A DNA stretch of 63,604 nucleotides. Source: Octopus bimaculoides. Its lineage: Eukaryota. Below, in pieces: positions 14,020-44,137 of the stretch (position 1 is the first letter of the stretch; each line of letters begins with the position of its first letter). The notes beneath the pieces were generated by a model. The model ran no database searches. It was given only the letters and a program-made list of their open reading frames with translations, and was not told the DNA's origin. The DNA lies in contig NC_068985.1 of assembly GCF_001194135.2 (NCBI RefSeq), positions 108,658,706 to 108,722,309 of the forward strand, read 5' to 3'. Position numbers and translations under genes: made by a program.

Positions 14020-14561
14020 GGCACACATTGCCATACACGCACACACTGCCATACACGCACACACACAAGACACATTCAGACCTTGATACAAGAGTAACAC
14101 AGTAAACTCTATTCGTGATTGAAAAACAATCTAAAAATACATCAGACCAAGTTAAAAACTTCAGAAAGCCAACCTCCATAAATTATTCACCCCGTTCCTG
14201 CCACCGCCATCTTTCACCAAAGAACCAAAGAAAAAAAAGAAAATAACTATAAAACAAAAAGCGAGTTCAAATCTTTGGCCTTCTTCTCCATAGATATGAT
14301 ACCCCGACCCTTTCTAATAACCAGCCCACTTTTTCCAACCGTTCACAATTCTCTGATGGGTTGGTGCTGTTTGCTTTTTTATTTTTATTGTTGTTCTTTT
14401 GTTTTCTGAATTTTTTTTTTCTCACCGTTTTACAGATAAAAGAATGGCGTTTCCCCATATGGACAGATTTGATTTATTTTTTTCTACCCTGCTCTCCACC
14501 CCACCTCCACTTGACATTCTCATGTCGTTTAGTTGGCAGCAGTAAGCTCATGCCCCAGTCG

Positions 14562-14672
14562 CTTCTTCTTCTTCTTCTTCTTCTTCTTCTTCTTCTTCTT
14601 CTTCTTCTTCTTCTTCTTTTTCATCATCATCATCATCATCATCATCCCCATCATCACCATCATCACTATCAC

Positions 14673-14710
<38 letters not shown>

Positions 14711-14730
14711 CCATTATCACCATCATCGTC

Positions 14731-14781
<51 letters not shown>

Positions 14782-14782
14782 T
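14562..14782. repeat. (CTT)n + (CAT)n compound trinucleotide microsatellite
   Basis: Direct reading; produces the spurious poly-L/H/I/M ORFs. Confidence 0.95.
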
Positions 14783-15879
14783 ATTCTTTCTCTTTCTTTT
14801 ATACTCCACTCCCCTTCCTCCTGCTCCCCCTCATCTTTTTTCTTTCGCTCTTAATTTCTTTCATTCTTTCTTCCTCCCTCTCCTCCCTCTTTCCTCTCCC
14901 ACCTTCTACTACTACTACTTCTTTTCCCACTACTACTACTTCATCGTCTTTCTCTTCTTCCCCCTGTTCATTTATATATATTTCAAAAAATTCGAGAAGT
15001 TTTTTTCCCTGGTTCTTATACACATTCTCGTTGTTGTCATCATCGCCGCCACTGTTTCTATTGTTGCTAATATTTATGTTGTTTATGCTGTTTGTATTGT
15101 TCATTTACTCTTACATTTCTCCTTCTTACCCTTCTCTACCCCGCCACGTCTCTTCTCCTTCATTTTTCATTCTGCTTTGCACCATTTCTCATTTGCTTTC
15201 GAAAATCATATATTACAATGAAACTTTGCATAATTGTGTAAGTATATGCCTGCCTTCAGCATGTGTACATATATGTGCTTATATACATATGGGCGCGTAT
15301 CTATGTGTGTCAACGCATAAATGTATTGTTAAATGGGTATCTGTTTCTCTGTATGTTCGTGCCTATTTGAACATATATGCATACGTGTGCATGTGCACAA
15401 GTGTGCTTATCATTCTTTGCTTTGTATGAGTGTTTATATGTTATATATGTATCTCTGTAGCATATTGTGGTTGTTTTCGCAGCGTGTACTACTGTGTTGA
15501 ACCCACATCTCTGGTAGAAGCATAAAATCAAAAACAAACTTTAAACTATGTCTATTGCATAATATGACTTCATTATGATTTTAACTTCTGTTTCTCACTG
15601 TATATTAGATTTGAAAACAAATTACAAGATTATATCATAGAATTCCAAGAATAGAATCATTATAAAGATAATACTATCTTCGGTGAATGTGATGCACTGA
15701 CTTAACACTCCCAAAATATACACTCAATTATGTAATAACTTAAATAAAGCAATGAAAAATAAATGAATAATGCATATTAAGTCAAGTTTACCAGCAACAT
15801 TTTCATTTTCTAATACGTACTTTGTGTGATTGCTTCCCTTAGTTTTGTATTACTTCTTAAGTAATGTGTAATATGCTTG

Positions 15880-18429: not shown

Positions 18430-19300
18430 ATTAGTGCAAGCCTCTCGGTTGGTGTTACTCAGCTAGTTTTGCAATATTTTCCTCCAACGTTGTCAAAGAT
18501 ATTCGAAGATCACCTGTTTCTACGATGTCGATTTGATTAATAGCTTTTGACATTATGCTAGTGACATGGCAGAAACCAGATTCAACAAGGTAAGATAAAA
18601 GAAAAGCAGTAAAGTACAATTGCGCTCCCTCCCAGAGTGGTGGATACTTTGTAGCAGTGTCGTTACTTTTCCATACATTATGTTCTCCATCTTTAAATCC
18701 TGCTTGAAATATTTCATCACTCTGTAATTCAATAGGATTCTCCTGCAAACAGATATCTGCACCAGCAACATTAACTTCAAAAGAAAATGTCACCCAACGT
18801 GGTATATCTAACCCCCAGCAGGTCACTAAACCGAGCTTACATATCAACATTCAAGTTTTTCAAATGTTCAGCATACAGTACAAGGTCATCATAGTGTTGA
18901 TTACTATGAATTGACAGTAAACTAGGAAATTGTAATAATGCACAACATACAATAATCATTTTCTAGAGCTGTACTTTCTCTAGAAAAGCAGTAATAGCTC
19001 TTTTGGCGGACATGAGATTAAAGTTTTCGCCCTACAGCTATTTATTAATCAAATTAATGTTATCAAATATATCTGATAAATAAGATATATCACATTTAAC
19101 TGAATTGTTTCTATTGTTATTCTGTCTGATCTCCGAATGGATTTGAAGCTTTGCTGACTTCATTTGGCAAATCATTTGACAGTACATCCATACATATGAG
19201 GCGCAGTGGTTTCGCTTCATTTTGTAGCGATAGAATAAAACCGTAAGACAGATATTCAATGGAATGCTGTCGGCATTTCCGCTTAGTCGCAGGGGCGAAA
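18430..19300 (-). mobile_element. hAT (Charlie/Buster-like) transposase remnant, internally deleted
   Basis: N-terminal RKCRQHSIEYLSYGF...LICMDVLSND..MKSAKLQIH (BED-finger-like) joined directly to C-terminal YLSDIF...RFSDLL...YPPLWEGAQLYFTAFLLSYLVESGF...GDLRISLT...HQPRGLH* (dimerisation domain). Confidence 0.85.
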
Positions 19301-31030: not shown

Positions 31031-32593
31031 ATTCAAGCAATAAGATTTCACAAATTTCCCCAATTGAACGCTGCTTAGCACCAAGTCAAGCACGATCGAG
31101 GAGATCGATGGCTAAAAGATGTTCCAATAATGACTATTATGTCATTTATTCAGACATGGTGTATTTAAGATAAAATATACTCGAATGTATTCTTCTACGT
31201 TGTAAGATGGTCGACCGTGATTTAATAAAGATTAGAATGTTAGTTGTAGAACATGTAGCTACCAGGTAGAGGAACTCCGTTTTTTGGATGGCATTGTATT
31301 GTTACAGAATAGAGTTTTCCAACACGGCTAACGTTTCTTAAAGTAACGTTCTGAAAATAGGTGCTATTTTATGTTAAGAAAGAAACCTACGAAAACCTGA
31401 AGCTGCGATTTCATTGAAAATTTTCAGGAAGCCATTGATCTTCTAAAATGTAAGTAATCGATTGTATTCGCGTATAAAGGAGAAGAAGAATTTGTGGATT
31501 TATTCAGGAATCCTCGTGATCCCTCCACTAGTAAAGGCTGTGTGCAAAACACTAAAGTTCTTTTCTATTTGTGCAAAGGGGACTTAATATATTTTATGAA
31601 TGTATTCAGTCGGCTTTTGCTAATATCAGCCGGCTTCTGATTTCACTAGATTCCTGATGTCTAGTTTGATTGGAGAAACCGACAAGACAGTGAGAATGAA
31701 ACAATTGGTGTTGTGATAAGATTATACTGGTTATACCGCTACGTGATGAGATTATTACTAGTCAATCTGTTGCAATAGATAAAATCCGAATATTTGAATC
31801 TATTTTCCAATGAATCGTGCAGTTATAATATTTAGACCCAGGAAGGATTTCAGAGGGCACCAACTGATGTATTAATTTGTTTTAATATTTAGACCGAAGG
31901 CATTAATCTGTAGTAATCCTGATTGATTAATTTAAAATGAAACATTGCTTTTTGAGTTCATAGCTGGTTTGTTTACTATTAGTAAAATTTATAAGAAAAC
32001 AGTGATCAAATCTAGTGAACTCTTATATGAAGATTCCAGAAGAGTTTTAGTAAATGATACTGAAAATTTACCGTTGCTGAATTTTGACCATCATCATCTT
32101 AAGTGTATGGGAAACTCGTTACCTAGAGTAGGCATTTATACTTGTTCTACTATACTTTAATTACATCCTAATAAAATAAGCCGGTGAACTTTTGGCATCC
32201 TAACAATATTTATATAAAACAAACGAACCTGTCGCAGGCCCACCTGTCTTGGTTCTTCATGGTATCATTCAAACCATGTACTGGAATCTAATGAAATACT
32301 TATCAAATGTATTTTGCGTAATCTGTAGAAATGCAAGCTTTGCTTTTAATTAAATGAATTTATGTTTAGACGAACATAGCTAGTATGAGTGAAATTATTA
32401 TTATTTTTCACCATGGACATCACGCAGTCCAGTTCTTGTGGTATGAACAGTCGAATGTTGGTTTACTAATGTGACATTCTATCGAGTTTGTCGGTATTCA
32501 TGCTTGAAATATATTTAGCAGAACTTCAAAATCATAAAAGATAACTATTATTAGATAAGAGAATTTGAGAGAAATGTCCTTTTGGTGTTTCTT

Positions 32594-32599
32594 TTTATT
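32594..32599 (-). terminator. Candidate polyadenylation signal (AATAAA) of the S-crystallin gene
   Basis: First minus-strand AATAAA I found downstream of the stop (~380 nt), followed by pyrimidine/U-rich sequence. Not verifiable without transcript data. Confidence 0.4.
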
Positions 32600-32975
32600 G
32601 GAATCTTGGTAAGCTGATTGTTAAAAGATTACAAGAAATTTCACTAAATGCCACAGCTTTGCAGTTCTATAACATTCTCTGACAGGTTTGGGATTGTCAG
32701 AAAATTTTCAGTTTCAATGCATTGCAACACAGATGTGTTTTCCCTTGAAAGGTAAGAAAAAGGCAACGATTTTTAAAAATGAAGAAAAAGAAAATAACTG
32801 AATTATTGAGACATATTTTGTGTGTTATTTCATTAAAATTTTAGACACCAGAGAAACTGGTTCACATTGATAATAACTGATGTGTTTTGTTGTGACTTTT
32901 AAGTATTTTCGGTTGTTATTGTTCTTGTTATTGATTTCATGCGAGAAATCCACGCTATTAGTGTGGATTTCACAT

Positions 32976-33140
32976 TTAAAATTCGGTACGTGGTTGACTC
33001 CTAAGGTACATGGAAATCTTTGGGTGGTTTTGGATGCGGTTTCTCAGAGACTGCAATTTGGGGTAACGGCTGAGGAAAGAAGGTTCTTCAATTAAGGGGT
33101 TCTCAAGAGCACAGTAGCACATCATATCAGCCATAGTCAT
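32976..33140 (-). CDS. S-crystallin coding exon 6 (terminal): [54 protein letters not shown]
   Basis: Acceptor ttttcttgctgcag|ATG; TAA stop at 32978-32976; GST N-capping motif (T-M-A-D) present. Confidence 0.97.
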
Positions 33141-36100
33141 CTGCAGCAAGAAAAATAAAAATTATATCAATTGAAAAAGGGATAAAATCGCATTTCTGTT
33201 TGTGAAAAAGTATATTCGACATTTTTTTATAATAAAGATGTAATGATAGAAAGTGCTACCTAACTAGAGATTTATCGTTCTAAAATATAAGGATTTCTGA
33301 TATTGTGATGCAAATCCACAAATTTTGTGAATGGTCGGTGCGTATAGTCGATTAAATAGACCCTATAACTTATCTAATCAAGCCCTTAATTGTGAAAAGA
33401 AATGATGTCAGTTATAGAGGTATTTGAACTCGGAAAGTAAGGAGATATAACTAAATAATTGTGGCTTCAACCATTCAGCTAATCTATCACCCTAGAAATA
33501 TAAAATATAGAGCAGATGTGGAGACACAATAAAATATGATTATATAACGTATTATATCTTGAAAGATGTGATGTAAACAAAATAAAGTATAATTATGAAA
33601 TAAATTTGATCTGTAAAATTAGATTAAATCTTTAGATCAGATGTAATAGCATATAAAGTAATAACATAAACTGTTATATCTTCAGAGCAGATGTACCGAT
33701 ATAATACAATACAACTTTGCAGTAGAGTTGAATAATATCCCACGCATCCAGTGTAATATTACAATCTGCGAAACTACGTAATCTCTTAACTGCTCATTTA
33801 TTCTCGCTTTCTTTAACTTTCTACCAATACAGAATTTAATAATGTATCTCATTGGTAGTTATTGCTTTGCTTCATGTCCATGCTGAACAAGCAGACTAAT
33901 GATCAATGGTATATTCAGTGCCCCAGTCTTCCTGTTTACAAAGAGCATAGAAGTCAAGATCTGGCATTCGAATCTAACAGCTTTAACGGTTACTTATATC
34001 TTTCGTTAAGACTAGTGAAATATTATTAAAAAATTATTCGGGATAATATGCTTCAAAATGACAGTGCTAAAGCATAGGGGTTATCTTTCGTTGAGCTAAA
34101 TTGAAAACATAGTGCCGTTCTCAGTTTCAATAGAAAAATGGAAAAGAAGCAGCTGATTGTTCCCAGATACTTAAAAGTTATTGTTCTGGCTATTCTGACT
34201 GCATTTAAGATTAAAAAACAAAACAAAACAAGAGCAAATCTAACAATGTTAGCGTAAAAAGTTCTAGAGCGGTTCTGCTATCAATGATAACGTAAAAGTT
34301 CTAGCCATTTCTGCTATCAAAACTATTAATGACTCATTTGTCTTAATTGTATACAGGCACGATAATAATGCAGACTGAAAGGACACTGTGTTTCTGATGG
34401 ATGTGTCTTTCGCTTGTTGTACTAAAATGGAACCAATCGATTGGACAGAACCTCTGATAGAGTAGCGATCTAATCCAGACAAAGAAACATATTTCTTTTC
34501 GCCAAATACCAACAAAAATACCGGGACAAGCTTCAGCAGATTAAGTCTAACTACGTGGCATAAAATATTCTTTGCATTTTAACTTTGATTTGTTTCAGTC
34601 ACTGGACTGAAACCATGCCAGAAGACAACCTTGACGGGTTTAGTCGAACGATTCCCCCACAATACTTACATTTTTAATCTGGTATTTATTCTATCAGTCT
34701 CTTTTGCCCTACCGATAAATTACGGGCGCGCAAACAGGTTATGAAGTTGGGCAAAAAACACAAAGACAACACACACACACACAAACACACACAAATACAC
34801 ACATGCGTACGTCGGGCTCGCACATAGTTTCCGTCTGCCAAATTCACGCACAAGATATTAGTGGGCCTAAACCACTTACCCATACTACCACACATGAGAC
34901 AGAACCCCAAACCGTCAGGTTGCAATGCAAGCTCCTTAATTAACACATCCATTTTTGCGCCAATGTTACAAGACATTGGTCAAATTATGTCCAAGTATCT
35001 TCGCCTAATCATTTGCTGACATTCATCATTCTTTGAGGCCAGACTTATCGCCAGTCATATTCAATGAATAATCTAACTGTGTAACATGAAAATTTTCGAG
35101 ATATTTGCAATCAGGGTTGCATGTTGACTGAATCAAAACGGATCAAGAAATCACGTACCTGGTCTCCCATGAAATATTGATTTCCACTGTTATGCATTTC
35201 AAGTGTTCTCTCCAAATATGGAAGAAGCCTTTGGCAGGTTTCACGGAATCTCATGCGACGTTCAGGCTGGAAAAGATAGATAAAATTAGATGATTAAAAA
35301 CCGAAACTATCAATAAGGAAGAAATTTATGTAACATGGTGCATTTTCTTATATGGAGCAGACACTGTAATGCATTATTTTAGACATAGTACGGAAGTAGG
35401 TTACTAGACAGTGACTATAAACATAGAGCCGTATAAATGAGATACTTAAGAAATATCAAAATCTGGAGGTACTTTTGTTATTTTAGGATATTACAAAGAC
35501 GTTGCACCCATTTTATAATTAAGACTAGTTTAAAATCAGTTTCTTATAGTTCTTGGTACACAAATTGATTTCTTCTATAAATTTTAAGCAATTTGTTTGT
35601 TAAAAGTCACCCGAATCAGTCTGAGGTAAGACGAACTCTGCAATAGGAATCTTTGTATTCATTTCAAAACCTAACATATGAAAACTATTTTTAGAAAATA
35701 AATAATGATAAAACTTACGGAACAACTCATATCTTGATTCCTTTCGAACTGGAAAATAGAAGAAACATATATGTATAATAAAAGAAATAAGATGAAAAGG
35801 TATAATAAATGATACCCATTTTTCCTCTCTCAACTCCTGTTCCACTTTCTCCTCTGATATGGTTATTATTTGAGATTCTTCTTATGAAGTACTATCGTTT
35901 GATACGTTTAGACTTTTTCTCCTCCATTTGAGCGCGAAGCTGATACAGTATTTGTTAAAGCTTGTCACTCCTGAGCCCTTTTCCCTTCTGCTATTATAAA
36001 ACACCACACACACACACACACAAACACGTACACATAAACACGCACACGCACTCACGCACACACACACGCGCACACACGTGTATGTATATATGTATGTATG

Positions 36101-38081
36101 CATGTATGTATGTATGTATGCATGTATGTATATGTGAGGGTATATGATTTATTTACTTGAAGTTGTAAGCTTAGGGTAAGTGGAGCGTNNNNNNNNNNTA
36201 TATATAGTTGTATACACATACATATACACACACACTTTTCAAGTATTTTCGCCCTTCAGTGTATTCCTTTTACTGTGTAGGCAACAGGCTTAACCACGCT
36301 AATGTTAGAATTATCTTCTTATATTTTATAAGAAGGTATTTAAATATAAAATAACCGATTTCCTTGGAAATTAACATTAATCGATTAAATCAATTTCAAC
36401 AGAAACTGTAAATTAGTTTAATATAAACAAAGACGCTATTAGAACATATGAACAAGAAGAAGAGAGAATCAGAGCTTGTATAATCGATGGATTTGGAATA
36501 ATTTTCAAATACACACCATACGTACGGAGTAACATTGTGAAAACAATAGAAAATGCTCTACTATTTTGGATAGAACAATAAAACCCAATATAATGGCAGT
36601 ACCCACTTATCAGTATGCATGGGTGTATGTATATCTGAATACACGTGCACTGAATTTCAATAAATAATTGTCTTGTTTAGTTTGTATGGATATCTCAATG
36701 TGTAATACATAAGCATATATTTTCTCTTTTTCCATCTCTCTTGCTCCCCTCTGTTTCTCTCTCTGTGTGTGTATGCATATATATATATATATGTGCGTGT
36801 GTGTGTTTGTATCTGTGTGTATGTGTGTCTGTGTGTGTGTGTATGTGTGTGTATATATATAGTCGATTATATACATTCTCCTGAAGGATGAAATGCAATG
36901 CTGTCCTATCCTTTACTTGATATTATCCACCATGTTCTCACTAATTGTAAACTCTCGCACAGGCACAGGCAAACTCTACCTGTACTCAACGTTGACCGCC
37001 TAAAATCACCAATACATAGAAATGACATCGATAACCACTGCAACCATCGGCTTTTATTTTAGGCATTAAAAATTTTGAATCCCTCACCCTCATTCTTCCT
37101 TCTCTGTCCTGGTACATCCTCATGTAGTCATCCATGATGTCATAGAAACAGTGCGAGATGAAGTCAACTCTGGCCATCTCCATGCTGCTTTTTCCATGGA
37201 AACCTTTTAAAAATATGAAACATTTGAATATCATGAACGTAAAATTTTAGTTGGGGCATATTAATCCTAGTGTATTTTTAATATAATATTACTTTCAAAT
37301 TTTGGCACAAGACCAGCAATTTCAAATTGTGTGCTAATTCGATTACATCCACCTCAGCGCTCAACTTGTATTTATTTTATCGACGTTGAAAGCTGAAAGG
37401 CAAATCGATCCCAGTGACTGTTGAATTTCAGGGCATAAAGACGGACGAAATGCCGCTAAGTATTTCGCCCGGTGTATTAACTATTCTGCCACCTGCCTGC
37501 CTTGTTCATTAACGTTATTGGCATCTTTCATCTTTTATATTTTACTTTGTTTTAGTCATTTGACTGCGGCCATGCTGGGGCACCGCTTTAGATTTTTTGT
37601 CGCACGCATCGACCCCACTACTTATTTTAAAAGCTCCGTACTTATTCTATTGGGTTCTTTTGCCGAATCACTAAGACACGGGAACGTAAAATCACCAAAC
37701 CAGTTGTCAGACGGTGATGGAAGGGAGATACACACACAGAACAAATAAACAAATACACACACAGAACACAGAACAAATAAGCAAACATATATACGACGGG
37801 CTTCTATCAGTTTCCCCTCTATTATATCCACTCACAAAGCTTTGGTCGGCTCGTGACTATAGAGCTATATTTTGGCACAAGCCCAGTAATTGCGAGGAAG
37901 GCGCTGAGTCGATTACATCGATCCTAGTGTCCAAATGTTACTTATCTTATCGACCCCGAAGGATCAAACGCAAAGTTGATCCCAGCGATATTTGAATTCA
38001 GAAAGTAATAATGTCGCTAAGCATTTTTCCCGGCGTGCTAACGATTCTGCCAGCTCGCCATGCTCTTCACTGATATATCAT

Positions 38082-38136
<55 letters not shown>

Positions 38137-41100
38137 GAGTATATGCATATATATGTACATGTATGTACATACCTTCATCTACATGTATATATAGATGCAT
38201 ATCTGGGCACAGGACGTACAAAAAAGTGGACAAAATGATAAACAGGGTACAGAGAACACACAGTCCACATAGAGAACATTTCCTTCATCAGCTGCCACTA
38301 ATCTAACATTGGCGTTTCGAAGAGCTAGGGCATATATATATATAATATTGCTGCCTATCTTATAAACCTCAGAATTGTTAAGGTGGAACTTAACATTGAA
38401 TTTAAAATAAAAGGGGACGAAGCAAATTATTGTAGAGCATTTAGTCTGGCACTCTACTACTTTGGACGCGTCAAAGTAGTCGCAGGAATGGCTGACTGTG
38501 TGGTTAAGAGAATCGCTTTGCCACCGTGTGAAACACAGTTAAAACTTCCGGTGGTCTGAGAATGTGGGCCACTGTGGTTCTTTGCTTATTATGTTTACTT
38601 TCGTCGTTGTTGCAGTTCGTAAAGCATGACGTTATAGCGTCCCATCAGATTTTGTCACAAAATATTCGGTGTTAGTGTCTATAGAAAGAAAGGCCTGTTA
38701 TTGCCTTGTGTGTTATGGAAACAAAATTAGGATCGTCATACTTTTCTTAATGCCCCACTTTGAAAATGATAAAAAAAGCTCTGCAGCCGAGAAGGCTTAT
38801 TGTTTTTGTTTTAAGCCGTTTGCTTTCCAAACCGGCTTCGTGTTTAGTCTACAGACCTCGCTGGGTCTTCAAGTCTAAGATGAGGTCAGTATCCATGTTT
38901 TAGGCATTTTTCTTCTTGCTTAACTTATGTACAAAGTAAAATTTACCCGGGAATAGATTCATTTTGCCGATATAAAATTATATATTTATTCTTGCAGGGA
39001 AATAGCACAGGAGTGTTATACCGTAAAACCTGTTGAAGTATGGCCCAGAAATGGATCTTATAGTACTAGTGACAAGTTCTTGTCAGAGAGCATACAAATT
39101 GAATAGCCTATAATTTTACAATTTATAGTATATGAGACCAATTACTATATTTTCCTTTTCCTTTTAATTTCATTGAAATATTTTAGCACTTATGAAAGGA
39201 ACGCTGGTTCTACTTACCAAATTCTCTGGCCAGGTATCTAGCGATGGACATGCTTTGAGGAAACTGGGTTCGGTTATCAATCTCCAAGACTGGTAACATA
39301 GAACATGGCATTCCTGAAATTAAAGTTAACAGAAACAAAGTTTATACATGGAAATATAAAAACCACTGAAGTTTTGACAATCTGTTCATAAGTCAAAAGT
39401 CATATAATATAAATAATATCAGATTGTGTCAGCACTAATTTTAGAGAGAAAACACCAACAGACTTACTGATTAAATTATTGTTCCTTTTCTGTTTGGAAA
39501 TAGTACTTGTTATATCAAATATCATCTACATAGAAATTTTAGCTGTTAATTTGAAAATTAATTTAATGGTGTGCATGTCTGTAGAATTCACATCCACTTA
39601 CTACTTAATCTAGGTGCAGGTAATTCGAATGATCGATCAACTGAATCCTCAGCGTCGAATGATAAAAATCCTTCTCTAAGATGATTAGTTGGAGAGTTGC
39701 CAAGATTCATATAATAATGTTATTTCAATCATGATTGTAAGAGCACTAGATTTACTCATTATTGGAGTAAAGTAATTGTATATCTTTAAAAGTAAGCAGA
39801 ATGATTTTTTAGAATAGATTCAAGAGACCACTTAATGATAGACGAGTTGAGAAGACATGGAGAAAAGGGCTTAGACAGAGACCACCCCGTCTTTTATTGA
39901 AATGGAATCTATGAAATAGAGTTACAAATTTTCTCCTACGGTAGTTTTTATAAACAAGCTTGGAATGATTATATATAAAATGGGTGTTAGTATAGAAGAT
40001 GTAATTAGACCAAAAGTTTTAATTAAAATCGTGCCGTCAGTAATGAGGACTGAAATTTCTAAATGATTAAGATTTAAAAAGTTAAGGGAGATGATAGCGA
40101 AATTTTAATTAATTATCGTTTATCACATATGGAAAACAGTAGGAATTTAGCCTCATCTTTGGTAATATAATGATAACTCTGGACAAGAGCAGTATTATTA
40201 TTATTATTGTATTATTATTAAACCTCTATAACTAAGTTTAGTATTATTAAACTAATAATATAGTATAGTATTATTAAACTAATAATATAGTATAGTATTA
40301 TTAAACTAATAATATAGTATAGTATCATTAAACTATATTGATATAGTATAGTATTATTAAACATAGTATTATTAGACCTCTATAACTAAGCTTGGTCTTA
40401 TTTGCTTAGATAACAAAAGATGTATATAAAATATACTAATACCTTTTTTAAAATTGATGCCTATGTTGTAAAGTATAATTTATTTAATGCTTATATGCGA
40501 TTTGATAGTTAATGAGAATGTAACCCAAACTTATCGTGTCATTTCGAAGCATGATTCCCGAAATACTTATACAAATATGTTCAACTCATCTCTGATTATA
40601 AGAACGGATTTCTAAATCTTGGAACCTGTGAGATATACCCAATCACTTTCACTGCTCTGTGCTTAAGAATAAAGATATTTACACGTGAAATGTTCATTAT
40701 CCCAAGATGAAAATAAGTACCATACTATAAAAGGCATTTTAACAAAAAAAAACAAAACAAAAAAAGCATTTTAAACACTGAAACACTGGCAATTATTGTG
40801 CTAAAACGAGATGCTTTATTCCAGTTCACTTGTGGTTGCTCTGATGACACGATCGATATATTATCCATACAACCGTGAGTTCTTTTATTCCACTACCCTT
40901 ACTGAGTGGAATTTTTATTGCTATTATTGATTAACCTTATTCAGCGTCGGCCGAGTAGATGCATACACTTTGATGGTATAACTCAACGAACGCTTGAAAC
41001 AGTCGTATAAATCTTCCACCATCTTCGACATTTTTATTGCAGGACATTCTCCTGTATCGACTTAGCAATGAAATCCTGCTACACATAGGGCTAAAAGAGC

Positions 41101-42944
41101 TGAACGACAATTGAGTGTATCTACAAAAGACGTCTATTCTTTATGACGTGATAATTTCAGCGCCGTTTATCTAACAACTGGTGACCTAGGTGAACACATA
41201 CGGTGGAATCACTCATTAAGTAACTTTAGATAAGCTGTCTGTTAGAACGATTTCAAAGGTCCAATTGGAAAAACATGGGTGATGTCTAACAGAAAAAATT
41301 AAGGTTAAAATCGTTAGAATAGTGAACATCCCACCTTTATGCAAATAACAAGGCAGAATTTCTGTTGCAGAGATTCAAGAAGAGAAAGCAGTACGCGTAA
41401 ATGTCTTTCGCCATTTTGTAAACGAAACACGAGTGAGTATGCGATGTAGGTGTTAACGTGCTTTGTATAGTAAATTAAGAAACTTAATTCATTAAAATTA
41501 CTGACATGGATATGAAATTATTAATTAAACGTCTAGTTCAGGTAAACAATAATTAGGAATACAACTTCGATATTAGATGAAATTAAAATTAATTACGTTA
41601 TAATTAATTGATTGTGAAATGTTACATAAAAAACATTAATGACTTGAGAATTGTTAGGAGTTATGTCACTGAATTATGAATGGTTTATATGTTAAACGAT
41701 TACGTGAAATTAGATATAGATGACCGCTGCATGGAAAATTTAAACTAAAGTTGTTAGTAGGATATTTGTAAACCAAGTCTTTTAATTAATACTGCACTAT
41801 TGGTGATAAGGAGAGTCGTTATCTCAAAGACTAATTATAGTAAAAACTGGCGTATAAGTATGTTTCAATCTTTTCCTTTTAATTATGTGAATTCTTCCTA
41901 CAAAGATAGAGCTAATAGAAAGAATAGTGACTGTTGAACCATACACACAGAAATTTAACATTCTTTGGGGTGATATATCTTTTGTTCTGTTTATTTAGTG
42001 CAGTAAAATTGCTACTAGTATACGGTTTGATATGTTTATGCAACACATTTTATAATATCCATTTAATTTGATGTGGATATGCAAACATAACGATACTCGA
42101 TATAATCTTAAAGAGTTGATGTCATCTCTGAAAGTCACTTAGCAATAATGTGACGAACATGTTCAGATTGGAAACCTGTTAAGGTTATCTCTAGAGATTT
42201 TCTATGGAAATTATAGACAGCACCGATTTTATTATGACGTATTAGTGTTGGCTATAATTTCTATAGAAAATCTGTAGAGATAACCTAAACAACTAATGTA
42301 AGAGCACTGCTAACACAGTAGAGTCCAATATTAACTTACAAAAAACGTTTAATATACTTTAGAGTATATTATAATTGCATAGCGAAGTACCGCATCCATA
42401 CAAGTCACCAGGCTAGAAGCTGTTTTGCAGTTTTAATCGAGAAACAAATCAGAATCCATTAAAACAAGCAGTGGCTTAATGGTGTGGAAGGTGGACTCCC
42501 GCGTCAACAGTTCAGCATGATACAGCTTGCTGTACTGCGATCTTAGTTCAATGGTCAAGAAAGTGTGATGGTATTAATGTTGGGGGTTCTTGATTAGCTG
42601 AACAATCTGCATGATGAATATTATTAAAGTGGCGATGGTCTGTAGAGAACCAGTCCTACATTTTCATCTTCCAAACTTATATTGTTCTGGGACGAGTGCC
42701 AGAAGAACAGTAGTTATCGGGACGCAGAGTTTACATGGAATTACTATCACTTTGATGAGCAACTACAAAGTTGGAAGACTTTCATCTGCCCTAAGTCCGT
42801 TGGAGTGTATCCGAGCAATCGTCTTTCGGTAACAGTTTCCTGACGTGCAAGTCAGTACTTAGCAGGAACTTTACCAAGTGCCAAAAGACCTGATCAGAGC
42901 AGACATATAAACAACAATGGCTGAGGAGTATGTATGTATGTATT

Positions 42945-42978
<34 letters not shown>

Positions 42979-43303
42979 TACATACATAGTATATACATGT
43001 ATACGATTGCATGTGTGCAAACAGAAAAAATATATACTAATCAAGGCGTGTGGTCTCATGATATGAATTATTGATGGTTAGGATGTGAGTTCAATTTTTC
43101 TGCCAAGTAACGCGTTTGAACAGCTGAAAATGAGAGAGTGGAAAATCCGCAATGGGCCAGCAAGAGGTTTAGTGATGTATCTTCCTCTGTACGTCACTTA
43201 AATACGATATATATATATATATTTATATATTTGTATGTATGTATTATGTATATATGTATGTACGTAACGTATATTTATGCATACGCATATATATTGTATA
43301 TGA

Positions 43304-43360
<57 letters not shown>

Positions 43361-43657
43361 NNNNNNNNNNNNNNNNNNNNNNNNNNNNNNNNNNNNNNNN
43401 NNNNNNNNNNNNNNNNNNNNNNNNNNNNNNNNNNNNNNNNNNNNNNNNNNNNNNNNNNNNNNNNNNNNNNNNNNNNNNNNNNNNNNNNNNNNNNNNNNNN
43501 NNNNNNNNNNNNNNNNNNNNNNNNNNNNNNNNNNNNNNNNNNNNNNNNNNNNNNNNNNNNNNNNNNNNNNNNNNNNNNNNNNNNNNNNNNNNNNNNNNNN
43601 NNNNNNNNNNNNNNNNNNNNNNNNNNNNNNNNNNNNNNNNNNNNNNNNNNNNNNNNN

Positions 43658-43717
<60 letters not shown>

Positions 43718-43766
43718 GCATTCATATATATGTATGTAATTATGTATGTATTTGTGGATGGATGGA

Positions 43767-43797
<31 letters not shown>

Positions 43798-43957
43798 ATG
43801 TCTAATATACATTAGGGTACTTACTGCTTCTCATGTTGTTCCATTCTGAATATTCGATCCTGCGGTCGTTGTACTTGACACCGGCAGCTGCGAACAGCAT
43901 ACGGCATACCTCAGCACGGCCACGGTGGTTGAAGTAGTGGAGAGTATAGGAAGGCAT
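32976..43957 (-). CDS. S-crystallin (glutathione S-transferase sigma-derived cephalopod lens crystallin), long-loop type; spliced CDS of 6 exons, 215 aa
   Basis: Hand-spliced exons 43957-43825, 39313-39218, 37203-37088, 35748-35719, 35266-35159 and 33140-32976 sum to 648 nt with no internal stop. All 5 introns are GT...AG with compatible phases (1,1,0,0,0). The translation matches the S-crystallin family pattern I recall ([16 protein letters not shown]..., [17 protein letters not shown], [37 protein letters not shown]). The specific paralog cannot be assigned without a search. Confidence 0.97.
34590..34940 (-). mobile_element. Family B SINE in the last S-crystallin intron
   Basis: cagtcactggactgaaaccatgcc tail; agtttccgtctgccaaattcac CORE-adjacent segment. 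Confidence 0.7.
35159..35266 (-). CDS. S-crystallin coding exon 5 (108 nt): [36 protein letters not shown]
   Basis: Acceptor ttttatctatcttttccag|CCT, donor CAG|gtacgt; family-typical ETCxRxLPxxERTLEM...YFMGDQ. Confidence 0.97.
35719..35748 (-). CDS. S-crystallin coding exon 4, 30-nt loop micro-exon: [10 protein letters not shown]
   Basis: Acceptor gtttcttctattttccag|TTC, donor TCC|gtaagt; phase 0/0; the peptide resembles the S-crystallin insert peptide (recalled as FQRSRDMSSS-type). Confidence 0.93.
37088..37203 (-). CDS. S-crystallin coding exon 3 (116 nt): (G)[38 protein letters not shown]
   Basis: Acceptor tttcatatttttaaaag|GT, donor AGG|gtgagg; lies within listed ORF 36986..37234(-); the other two frames contain stops. 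Confidence 0.97.
37305..38062 (-). mobile_element. SINE stack in coding intron 2: family A (37305-37500), family B (37545-37870), family A (37870-38062)
   Basis: Recognisable family A heads (gctaagcatttt..cccggcgtgctaacgattctgccagctcgcc) and family B body. Confidence 0.8.
39218..39313 (-). CDS. S-crystallin coding exon 2 (96 nt): (R)[31 protein letters not shown](G)
   Basis: Acceptor ctttaatttcag|GA, donor TTTG|gtaagt; GST cis-Pro motif (LP) and QS motif present. Confidence 0.97.
40212..40390. repeat. 27-bp minisatellite (~4 copies of gtattattaaactaataatatagtata) bracketed by a direct repeat
   Basis: Units start at 40241, 40268, 40295 and 40322; bracket tattatta(a/g)acctctataactaag. Confidence 0.85.
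42177..42291. other. Long inverted repeat (47-bp arms, 5 mismatches, 21-nt spacer) in S-crystallin coding intron 1
   Basis: ggttatctctagagattttctatggaaattatagacagcac versus the reverse complement of gtgttggctataatttctatagaaaatctgtagagataacc. Confidence 0.9.
43825..43957 (-). CDS. S-crystallin coding exon 1 (aa 1-44 + 1 nt): [44 protein letters not shown]
   Basis: ATG at 43957-43955 (context CCAACT-ATG-C); donor GCA|gtaagt at 43824; contains the GST N-terminal Tyr8. Confidence 0.97.
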
Positions 43958-44030
43958 AGTTGGATTGTCTGATGCTCTTACGGCGTCGGTCTGGAAATAC
44001 TATATTAGCTGCTGTGAGTTAACAGTATTA

Positions 44031-44118: not shown

Positions 44119-44137
44119 CTATGGGTCTTAGTCATTG
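44119..44137 (-). other. Candidate upstream non-coding exon end (donor TAG|gtaagt at 44118) splicing to acceptor tatttccag| at 43991
   Basis: Consensus donor 128 nt upstream of a reasonable acceptor; possible own acceptor ctaactctcattag| at 44138. Confidence 0.4.

Follow-up and report, generated by a model that had tools for sequence, protein, structure and literature searches.

An intact and expressed six-exon S-crystallin gene of Octopus bimaculoides, most likely encoding a minor structural lens protein

Can a gene that is split into six short exons, with assembly gaps in two of its introns, be intact, and if so, what does its product do? The question is raised by positions 32976 to 43957 of a 63.6-kb stretch of Octopus bimaculoides DNA (63,604 nt; RefSeq assembly GCF_001194135.2, contig NC_068985.1, positions 108,658,706 to 108,722,309; hereafter the window), where an initial annotation made from the letters alone had proposed an intact S-crystallin gene. 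S-crystallins are duplicated sigma-class glutathione S-transferases (GSTs) that took on the role of bulk refractive protein in the cephalopod lens. We find that this gene is real, intact and expressed, and that it is very probably a functional, transcribed member of the octopus S-crystallin multigene family. Most likely, its product contributes to the refractive index as a minor structural protein of the lens and is not a detoxifying enzyme.

Rebuilt from sequence, the gene runs on the minus strand from a start codon at 43957 to a stop codon ending at 32976, exactly the span first proposed, and its six exons, all with canonical AG acceptors and GT donors, give a coding sequence of 648 nt and a protein of 215 aa without an internal stop. 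All five joints (Table 1) were found in O. bimaculoides RNA contigs of four public runs (X13 to X16) and match the six-exon model exactly, each of them skipping CT..AC on the plus strand, i.e., GT..AG on the strand of the gene. A single 432-nt RNA contig carries exons 5, 4, 3, 2 and 1 in order, with zero mismatches to the window. As the initial annotation had stated, the gene is largely invisible among the open reading frames (ORFs) of the window: the exons span 30 to 165 nt, and at the default cut-off of 60 aa, the 82-aa ORF around exon 3 is the only one in the gene long enough to pass.

Five of the six exons are obvious by six-frame translation. The sixth, exon 4, is the sole 30-nt in-frame AG..GT candidate with a polypyrimidine tract; it has a GTAAGT donor, aligns to the loop of the S-crystallin OctvuS4, and is included in RNA contigs of all four runs. 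This layout of six exons with a short, loop-coding exon 4 is the one expected of an S-crystallin gene, and the same layout is found in the paralog S-crystallin 2. A five-exon model of 205 aa, in which exon 3 is joined in frame to exon 5, was dropped because the RNA of all four runs includes exon 4, although, with only the best-supported joints considered, a minor exon-4-skipped isoform may accompany the six-exon mRNA. Several annotated paralogs are exactly 10 aa shorter, among them the 205-aa "S-crystallin 3" models of O. vulgaris and O. bimaculoides (P0022 and P0024); these models may have missed the 30-nt exon 4, rather than representing truly loop-less proteins.

The window is AT-rich (35% G+C) and contains 17 assembly gaps, two of which, 36189–36198 in intron 3 and 43361–43657 in intron 1, fall inside the gene. 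Both gaps are intronic, and the reading frame is therefore untouched. RNA contigs cross both of them, joining exons 3 and 4 over the first and exons 1 and 2 over the second. The orthologous locus of Octopus sinensis, which contains no N, is colinear through both gap places; it has ~55 nt at the position of the small gap, and an additional ~2 kb near the large gap, within intron 1. Short-read DNA contigs bridge neither gap, because both sit in TA/CA microsatellites, in which the contig ends fall; they do not contradict the model either. Since the flanks are not bridged by DNA, the lengths of introns 1 and 3 remain estimates. Thus, the gene is continuous, and the uncertainty is confined to intron lengths. 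Those of the 17 gaps that were checked have (TA)n, (CA)n or (TATG)n microsatellites on either side, at which short-read contigs stop, and stand for unresolved simple repeats, not lost unique sequence.

An exact-sequence look-up returned RefSeq XP_014781640.1, "S-crystallin 3-like [Octopus bimaculoides]", as identical to the protein; its gene, on chromosome CM046605.1 of GCA_001194135.2, also covers 10,982 nt from start to stop. As it has an annotation already, the gene is no discovery, but an ordinary, minor member of a well-known family; relative to the RefSeq entry, there is no difference in the protein, and the present analysis adds RNA-supported junctions, transcript ends and a comparative analysis. 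A literature search by accession numbers found no paper on the XP_014781640.1 paralog. The O. bimaculoides genome contains 27 S-crystallin genes, spread along one chromosome (Albertin et al. 2022, PMC9068888). S-crystallin 2 lies on the same chromosome, ~0.53 Mb away, and a tblastn search with the product matched only the six exons, so that no second S-crystallin copy was found in the 63.6-kb window.

Several lines of evidence place the protein within the family. It contains the two-domain GST fold, with a thioredoxin-like N domain and a helical C domain (Pfam GST_N, 2e-7; GST_C_3, 2e-17; GST_C, 8e-9), and its best PDB match is OctvuS4 (5b7c, E 1e-103), compared with 9e-51 for squid digestive-gland GST (1gsq), both over full-length alignments. 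It is 70–77% identical to the classical octopus S1–S4 crystallins and 43% identical to squid digestive-gland GST-sigma. A neighbour-joining tree, i.e., a distance method only, was built from 52 proteins comprising octopod and decapod S-crystallins, squid GST, and bivalve and echinoderm GST outgroups, a set that does not include an octopus digestive-gland GST. In this tree, the protein falls into the octopod S-crystallin clade in 96/100 bootstraps. The grouping with digestive-gland GST-sigma that would have spoken against the initial annotation was not found, as squid GST lies outside all cephalopod S-crystallin-like proteins in 99/100 bootstraps. Within the octopod S-crystallins, the protein, its O. 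sinensis ortholog and an Argonauta hians protein group together in 100/100 bootstraps, and this Octopus/Argonauta clade lies outside the core S1–S4 group.

Comparison with OctvuS4 (PDB 5B7C; Tan et al. 2016, PMC4976375), to which the protein is 75% identical over its full length, bears on the active centre. Both proteins have 215 aa, the loop insertion, Asp101, Met104 and Gln108, and all glutathione-binding residues, namely Tyr8, Arg14, Trp39, Arg43, Gln64, Ser65 and Asp98. In OctvuS4, Leu100, Asp101, Met104 and Gln108 replace Phe, Asn, Val and Phe of GST-sigma, respectively, and the alpha4–alpha5 loop comprises residues 112–122; together, these replacements and the loop lower kcat, tighten glutathione binding and raise stability, while reversion mutants regain activity (PMC4976375). 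S-crystallins have either Leu or Met at 100 and either Gln or His at 108, besides Asp101 and Met104; the window protein has the active centre in this state, with Met100, Asp101, Met104 and Gln108 and the loop encoded by exon 4. The features of an enzymatic sigma-class GST (Phe98, Asn99, Val102, Phe106 and no alpha4–alpha5 insertion) are absent, all four positions being in the S-crystallin state and the insertion being present. By analogy, the protein would bind glutathione and have little transferase activity. It differs from OctvuS4 by Met100 for Leu100, Arg110 for Gly110, His94 for Asp94 and Gln210 for Arg210, and has 21 rather than 28 Met. A further difference is Gly112, the commoner state, in place of Cys112, and hence there is no loop disulfide to glutathione in the window protein. 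With squid GST-sigma (PDB 1GSQ/2GSQ), it shares the fold, the domain order, the conserved catalytic Tyr and the glutathione-binding residues; in contrast, the squid enzyme lacks the loop, is Lys-rich and Met-poor, and has Phe98, Asn99, Val102 and Phe106 where the window protein has Met100, Asp101, Met104 and Gln108.

The composition points in the same direction. The hand counts of the initial annotation (21 Met, 27 Arg, 4 Lys and a K+R−D−E charge of +5) were all correct on recount, with Asp at 10 and Glu at 16. Met, Arg and Lys thus make up 9.8%, 12.6% and 1.9% of the residues, compared with 3.5% Met and 5.4% Arg in the squid enzyme. The predicted refractive increment, dn/dc, is 0.198 ml/g, within the range of octopod S-crystallins (0.196–0.199) and above that of GSTs (0.190–0.195; squid GST 0.191). 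The enrichment in highly refractive residues that had been called typical of lens crystallins is thereby borne out: the protein is Met/Arg-rich and Lys-poor and has a high predicted increment, as expected of an S-crystallin. The per-residue increments used are reportedly those of Zhao, Brown and Schuck (2011). The increments of Phe and Tyr, and the Lys-to-Arg trend of S-crystallins, agree with PMC4047532. In the proposed mechanism, the Met/Arg-rich, Lys-poor composition would give the high refractive increment, through which the protein would act as a minor structural component of the lens.

Comparison with O. sinensis shows how strongly this paralog is conserved. The ortholog XP_029636684.1 has 214 of 215 residues in common with it, together with the six exons, the splice sites, the colinear locus and a 95% identical promoter, and differs by Ser3Asn, ten synonymous changes and an intron 1 that is ~2 kb longer. 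The exons are 98.5% identical, whereas the introns are 85–90% identical. With dS at 0.088 and dN at 0.004, the ratio of nonsynonymous to synonymous change (dN/dS) is 0.043, and the gene is under strong purifying selection.

Against this background, several residues are unusual. His94, which the initial annotation had singled out as occupying a position where Asp is common, stands in a column where the 25 other octopod S-crystallins all have D or E, 14 of 15 other cephalopod family members have D, and the GSTs also have D/E; the Argonauta relative has Gln. Given that residue 94 lies on helix alpha4, one helical turn before Asp98, it is probably oriented towards the subunit interface and the glutathione site. 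At position 210, where the protein has Gln, the cephalopod family proteins compared, and squid GST, invariably have Arg; so do seven of the eight bivalve and echinoderm outgroup GSTs, the eighth having a gap. Phe62, Ser83 and Ile197 replace residues that are invariant among octopod crystallins (I62F, N83S and V197I). These residues and the separate conserved lineage are the only mildly new points of the analysis.

Expression was gauged by the word depth of RNA contigs, a crude measure that is unreliable for ratios, and the signal of the whole family was collected on exon 6 at a threshold of 80% likeness, so that contigs of paralogs were included. The transcripts of the gene are spliced and polyadenylated, with a contig depth of ~1800–2300 in X13 and X14 and ~15–28 in X15 and X16, and reach high depth only in runs in which the whole family is extremely abundant: family transcripts attain a depth of 10^5 in X13 and X14, and paralog contigs over the conserved start of exon 6 sum to ~4.5e5 and ~2.7e5, respectively. 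In X23, a run from the same study as X13 and X14, no transcript of the whole S-crystallin family was found. By contig depth, which measures ratios poorly, the window paralog accounts for <1% of the family signal in X13 and X14 and for ~7% in X16.

Very high RNA depth was also seen in all four runs over intronic stretches, namely 37243–37647, 37729–37890 and 37972–38300 in intron 2, and also 34584–34897 and 36782–36938. This depth is independent of the level of the gene, most clearly in X15 (~20,000 vs. 23 for exons), and these stretches are most likely dispersed repeats, SINE-like (resembling short interspersed nuclear elements) or microsatellite-bearing, that are transcribed from many loci outside the mRNA of the gene.

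The proposed role in the lens has to be weighed against five points. Expression in the lens is deduced only from the co-occurrence of the transcript with those of the family, the RNA runs being tissue-coded. In the richest runs, the transcript contributes the <1% of the family signal given above, and the share of the paralog in lens refraction would therefore be small. S-crystallin mRNAs have also been reported from the retina of O. bimaculoides (PMC2493028), and the family is thus not strictly lens-restricted. The nearest Argonauta relative is far less Met/Arg-rich, with a dn/dc of 0.195. Finally, the evidence on the paralog itself comes from the genome and from RNA. As a separate observation, this Argonauta hians protein (P0002) has only 12 Met and 11 Lys, and is far less crystallin-like than the Octopus orthologs.

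The alternative that survives best, though we consider it unlikely, is that the gene is a specialised paralog of S-crystallin lineage whose main role lies outside bulk lens refraction, e.g., in the retina, the cornea, another tissue or one lens layer, and which has been kept for a distinct glutathione-binding or structural function. Its membership in a clade of its own with the O. sinensis and Argonauta proteins, outside core S1–S4, would fit such a role, as would the replacement of residues that are invariant elsewhere (D/E94H, R210Q, I62F, N83S and V197I), the very low dN/dS, and the isolation of the gene, with no other family exon in the 63.6 kb and S-crystallin 2 about half a megabase off. 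The 3′ untranslated region (UTR) of ~400 nt is longer than the 135–198 nt of the retinal S-crystallin mRNAs (PMC2493028), and the share of the family signal varies between samples, from <1% in X13 and X14 to ~7% in X16. However, contig depth is unreliable for such ratios, the composition and the predicted dn/dc are fully crystallin-like, and the transcript occurs only in runs with huge amounts of other S-crystallins and is absent where those are absent. We would tentatively suggest, at rather low probability, that an old, separately conserved Octopus and Argonauta lineage, with several otherwise invariant residues swapped, strong purifying selection and low abundance, would suit a specialised job. 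If true, the lineage might, for example, serve one shell of the graded-index lens or bind glutathione outside the lens, rather than being redundant with the major crystallins.

Far less probable is a catalytically active sigma-class GST, i.e., a detoxification enzyme that is called "S-crystallin-like" merely by automatic annotation. Automatic names are indeed unreliable here, bivalve and echinoderm GSTs also being called S-crystallin-like, and the catalytic Tyr8 and the glutathione-binding residues are kept. However, the 43% identity to the squid digestive-gland enzyme falls well short of the 70–77% to lens S-crystallins, and 99/100 bootstraps leave squid GST outside the clade. The protein also carries Asp101, Met104, Gln108 and the loop, which in OctvuS4 depress an activity that reversion restores (PMC4976375), and the Met and Arg contents of 9.8% and 12.6% contrast with 3.5% and 5.4% in the enzyme. 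That the gene is an assembly chimera, with exons of different paralogs joined across gaps, or a pseudogene or dead copy, was tested and is rejected with near certainty: two gaps do lie in the gene span, short-read DNA contigs bridge neither, and exon 1 is nearly identical among many paralogs, with a DNA depth of ~8–10x single copy, but a single RNA contig runs through exons 5-4-3-2-1 without a mismatch, the six exons recur in unchanged order at the gap-free O. sinensis locus, the frame is open with a dN/dS of 0.043, and the transcripts are abundant and polyadenylated. A minor structural lens protein thus remains the preferred reading of the gene.

The features of the gene are collected in Table 1. 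RNA contigs ending in 18–21 T on the plus strand mark poly(A) addition at 32564 in X13 and X15, and at 32577 in X14. Upstream of the RNA 5′ end, the TATA-like TAATATAG is a putative promoter element; the O. sinensis ortholog has ATAAATAG at the same place, and the box is included in the promoter block of ~370 nt that is shared with that species. Alignment of the promoter with that of S-crystallin 2 gave no clear common block beyond a short leader before the ATG. A scan for promoters and terminators of bacterial type, which has no bearing on a eukaryotic gene, gave no hit. A TGACTAA motif at 44128–44134 on the minus strand, 171–177 nt upstream of the ATG, is one mismatch away from the AP-1 consensus TGACTCA and is conserved in O. 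sinensis. AP-1-like and antioxidant-response-element (ARE)-like sites are described in squid S-crystallin promoters.

Table 1. Positions of the S-crystallin gene features in the window, from upstream to downstream
Feature	Position	Strand	Length	Remarks
TATA-like box TAATATAG (putative)	44000..44007	−		43–50 nt upstream of ATG; 23–30 nt upstream of RNA 5′ end
5′ UTR	43958..43977	−	at least 20 nt	X13 RNA contig ends at 43977, followed by Illumina adapter
Exon 1, coding part	43825..43957	−	133 nt	Met1 to first base of codon 45; donor GTAAGT; junction 39313>43825 in RNA contigs of X13–X16
Intron 1	39314..43824	−		Holds assembly gap 43361–43657, with TA/CA microsatellites on its flanks
Exon 2	39218..39313	−	96 nt	Both flanking junctions present in RNA
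Exon 3	37088..37203	−	116 nt	Junctions 37203>39218 and 35748>37088 in RNA; codes His94 and active-centre residues Met100, Asp101, Met104, Gln108
Intron 3	35749..37087	−		Holds 10-N gap 36189–36198 within microsatellite
Exon 4	35719..35748	−	30 nt	10 aa; codes S-crystallin-specific alpha4–alpha5 loop insertion; junction 35266>35719 in RNA
Exon 5	35159..35266	−	108 nt
Exon 6, coding part	32976..33140	−	162 nt + TAA stop	Junction 33140>35159 in X13, X15, X16
3′ UTR	32564..32975	−	~400–412 nt	AATAAA at 32599–32594; poly(A) addition at 32577 or 32564

At the start of the coding sequence, the 5′ half of exon 1 (43896–43957) has a DNA contig depth of ~290–350, compared with ~30–45 in flanking single-copy sequence, and ~8–10 genomic copies therefore share this stretch at ≥95% identity. 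Gene conversion or strong constraint may explain why the nucleotide sequences that encode the N-terminus of S-crystallin paralogs have stayed almost identical.

Elsewhere in the 63.6-kb window, no further cellular gene was recognised. Outside the gene, the eight longest gap-free ORFs gave no Pfam match at E ≤ 0.01; the longest (131–178 aa), at 7559–8095, 60642–61118, 60153–60548 and 18455–18850, all on the minus strand, have the appearance of remnants of mobile-element proteins. A low-complexity region of ~1 kb at 14361–15429 on the plus strand, with poly-Leu/His/Ile/Phe ORFs of 286–298 aa in two frames, is a compound simple repeat, not a gene.

The locus shows that a six-exon model, a 30-nt exon included, can be read correctly from raw sequence without tools, and that the assembly gaps leave the gene undamaged: the paralog is transcribed, correctly spliced and strongly constrained. 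Beyond such quality control, the finding is of little importance, as the gene has a RefSeq model already and is one of the 27 S-crystallin genes of this genome (PMC9068888). Nevertheless, His94 and Gln210, together with the low relative abundance of the transcript, provide a small lead on how the S-crystallin paralogs may divide the work in the graded-index lens.

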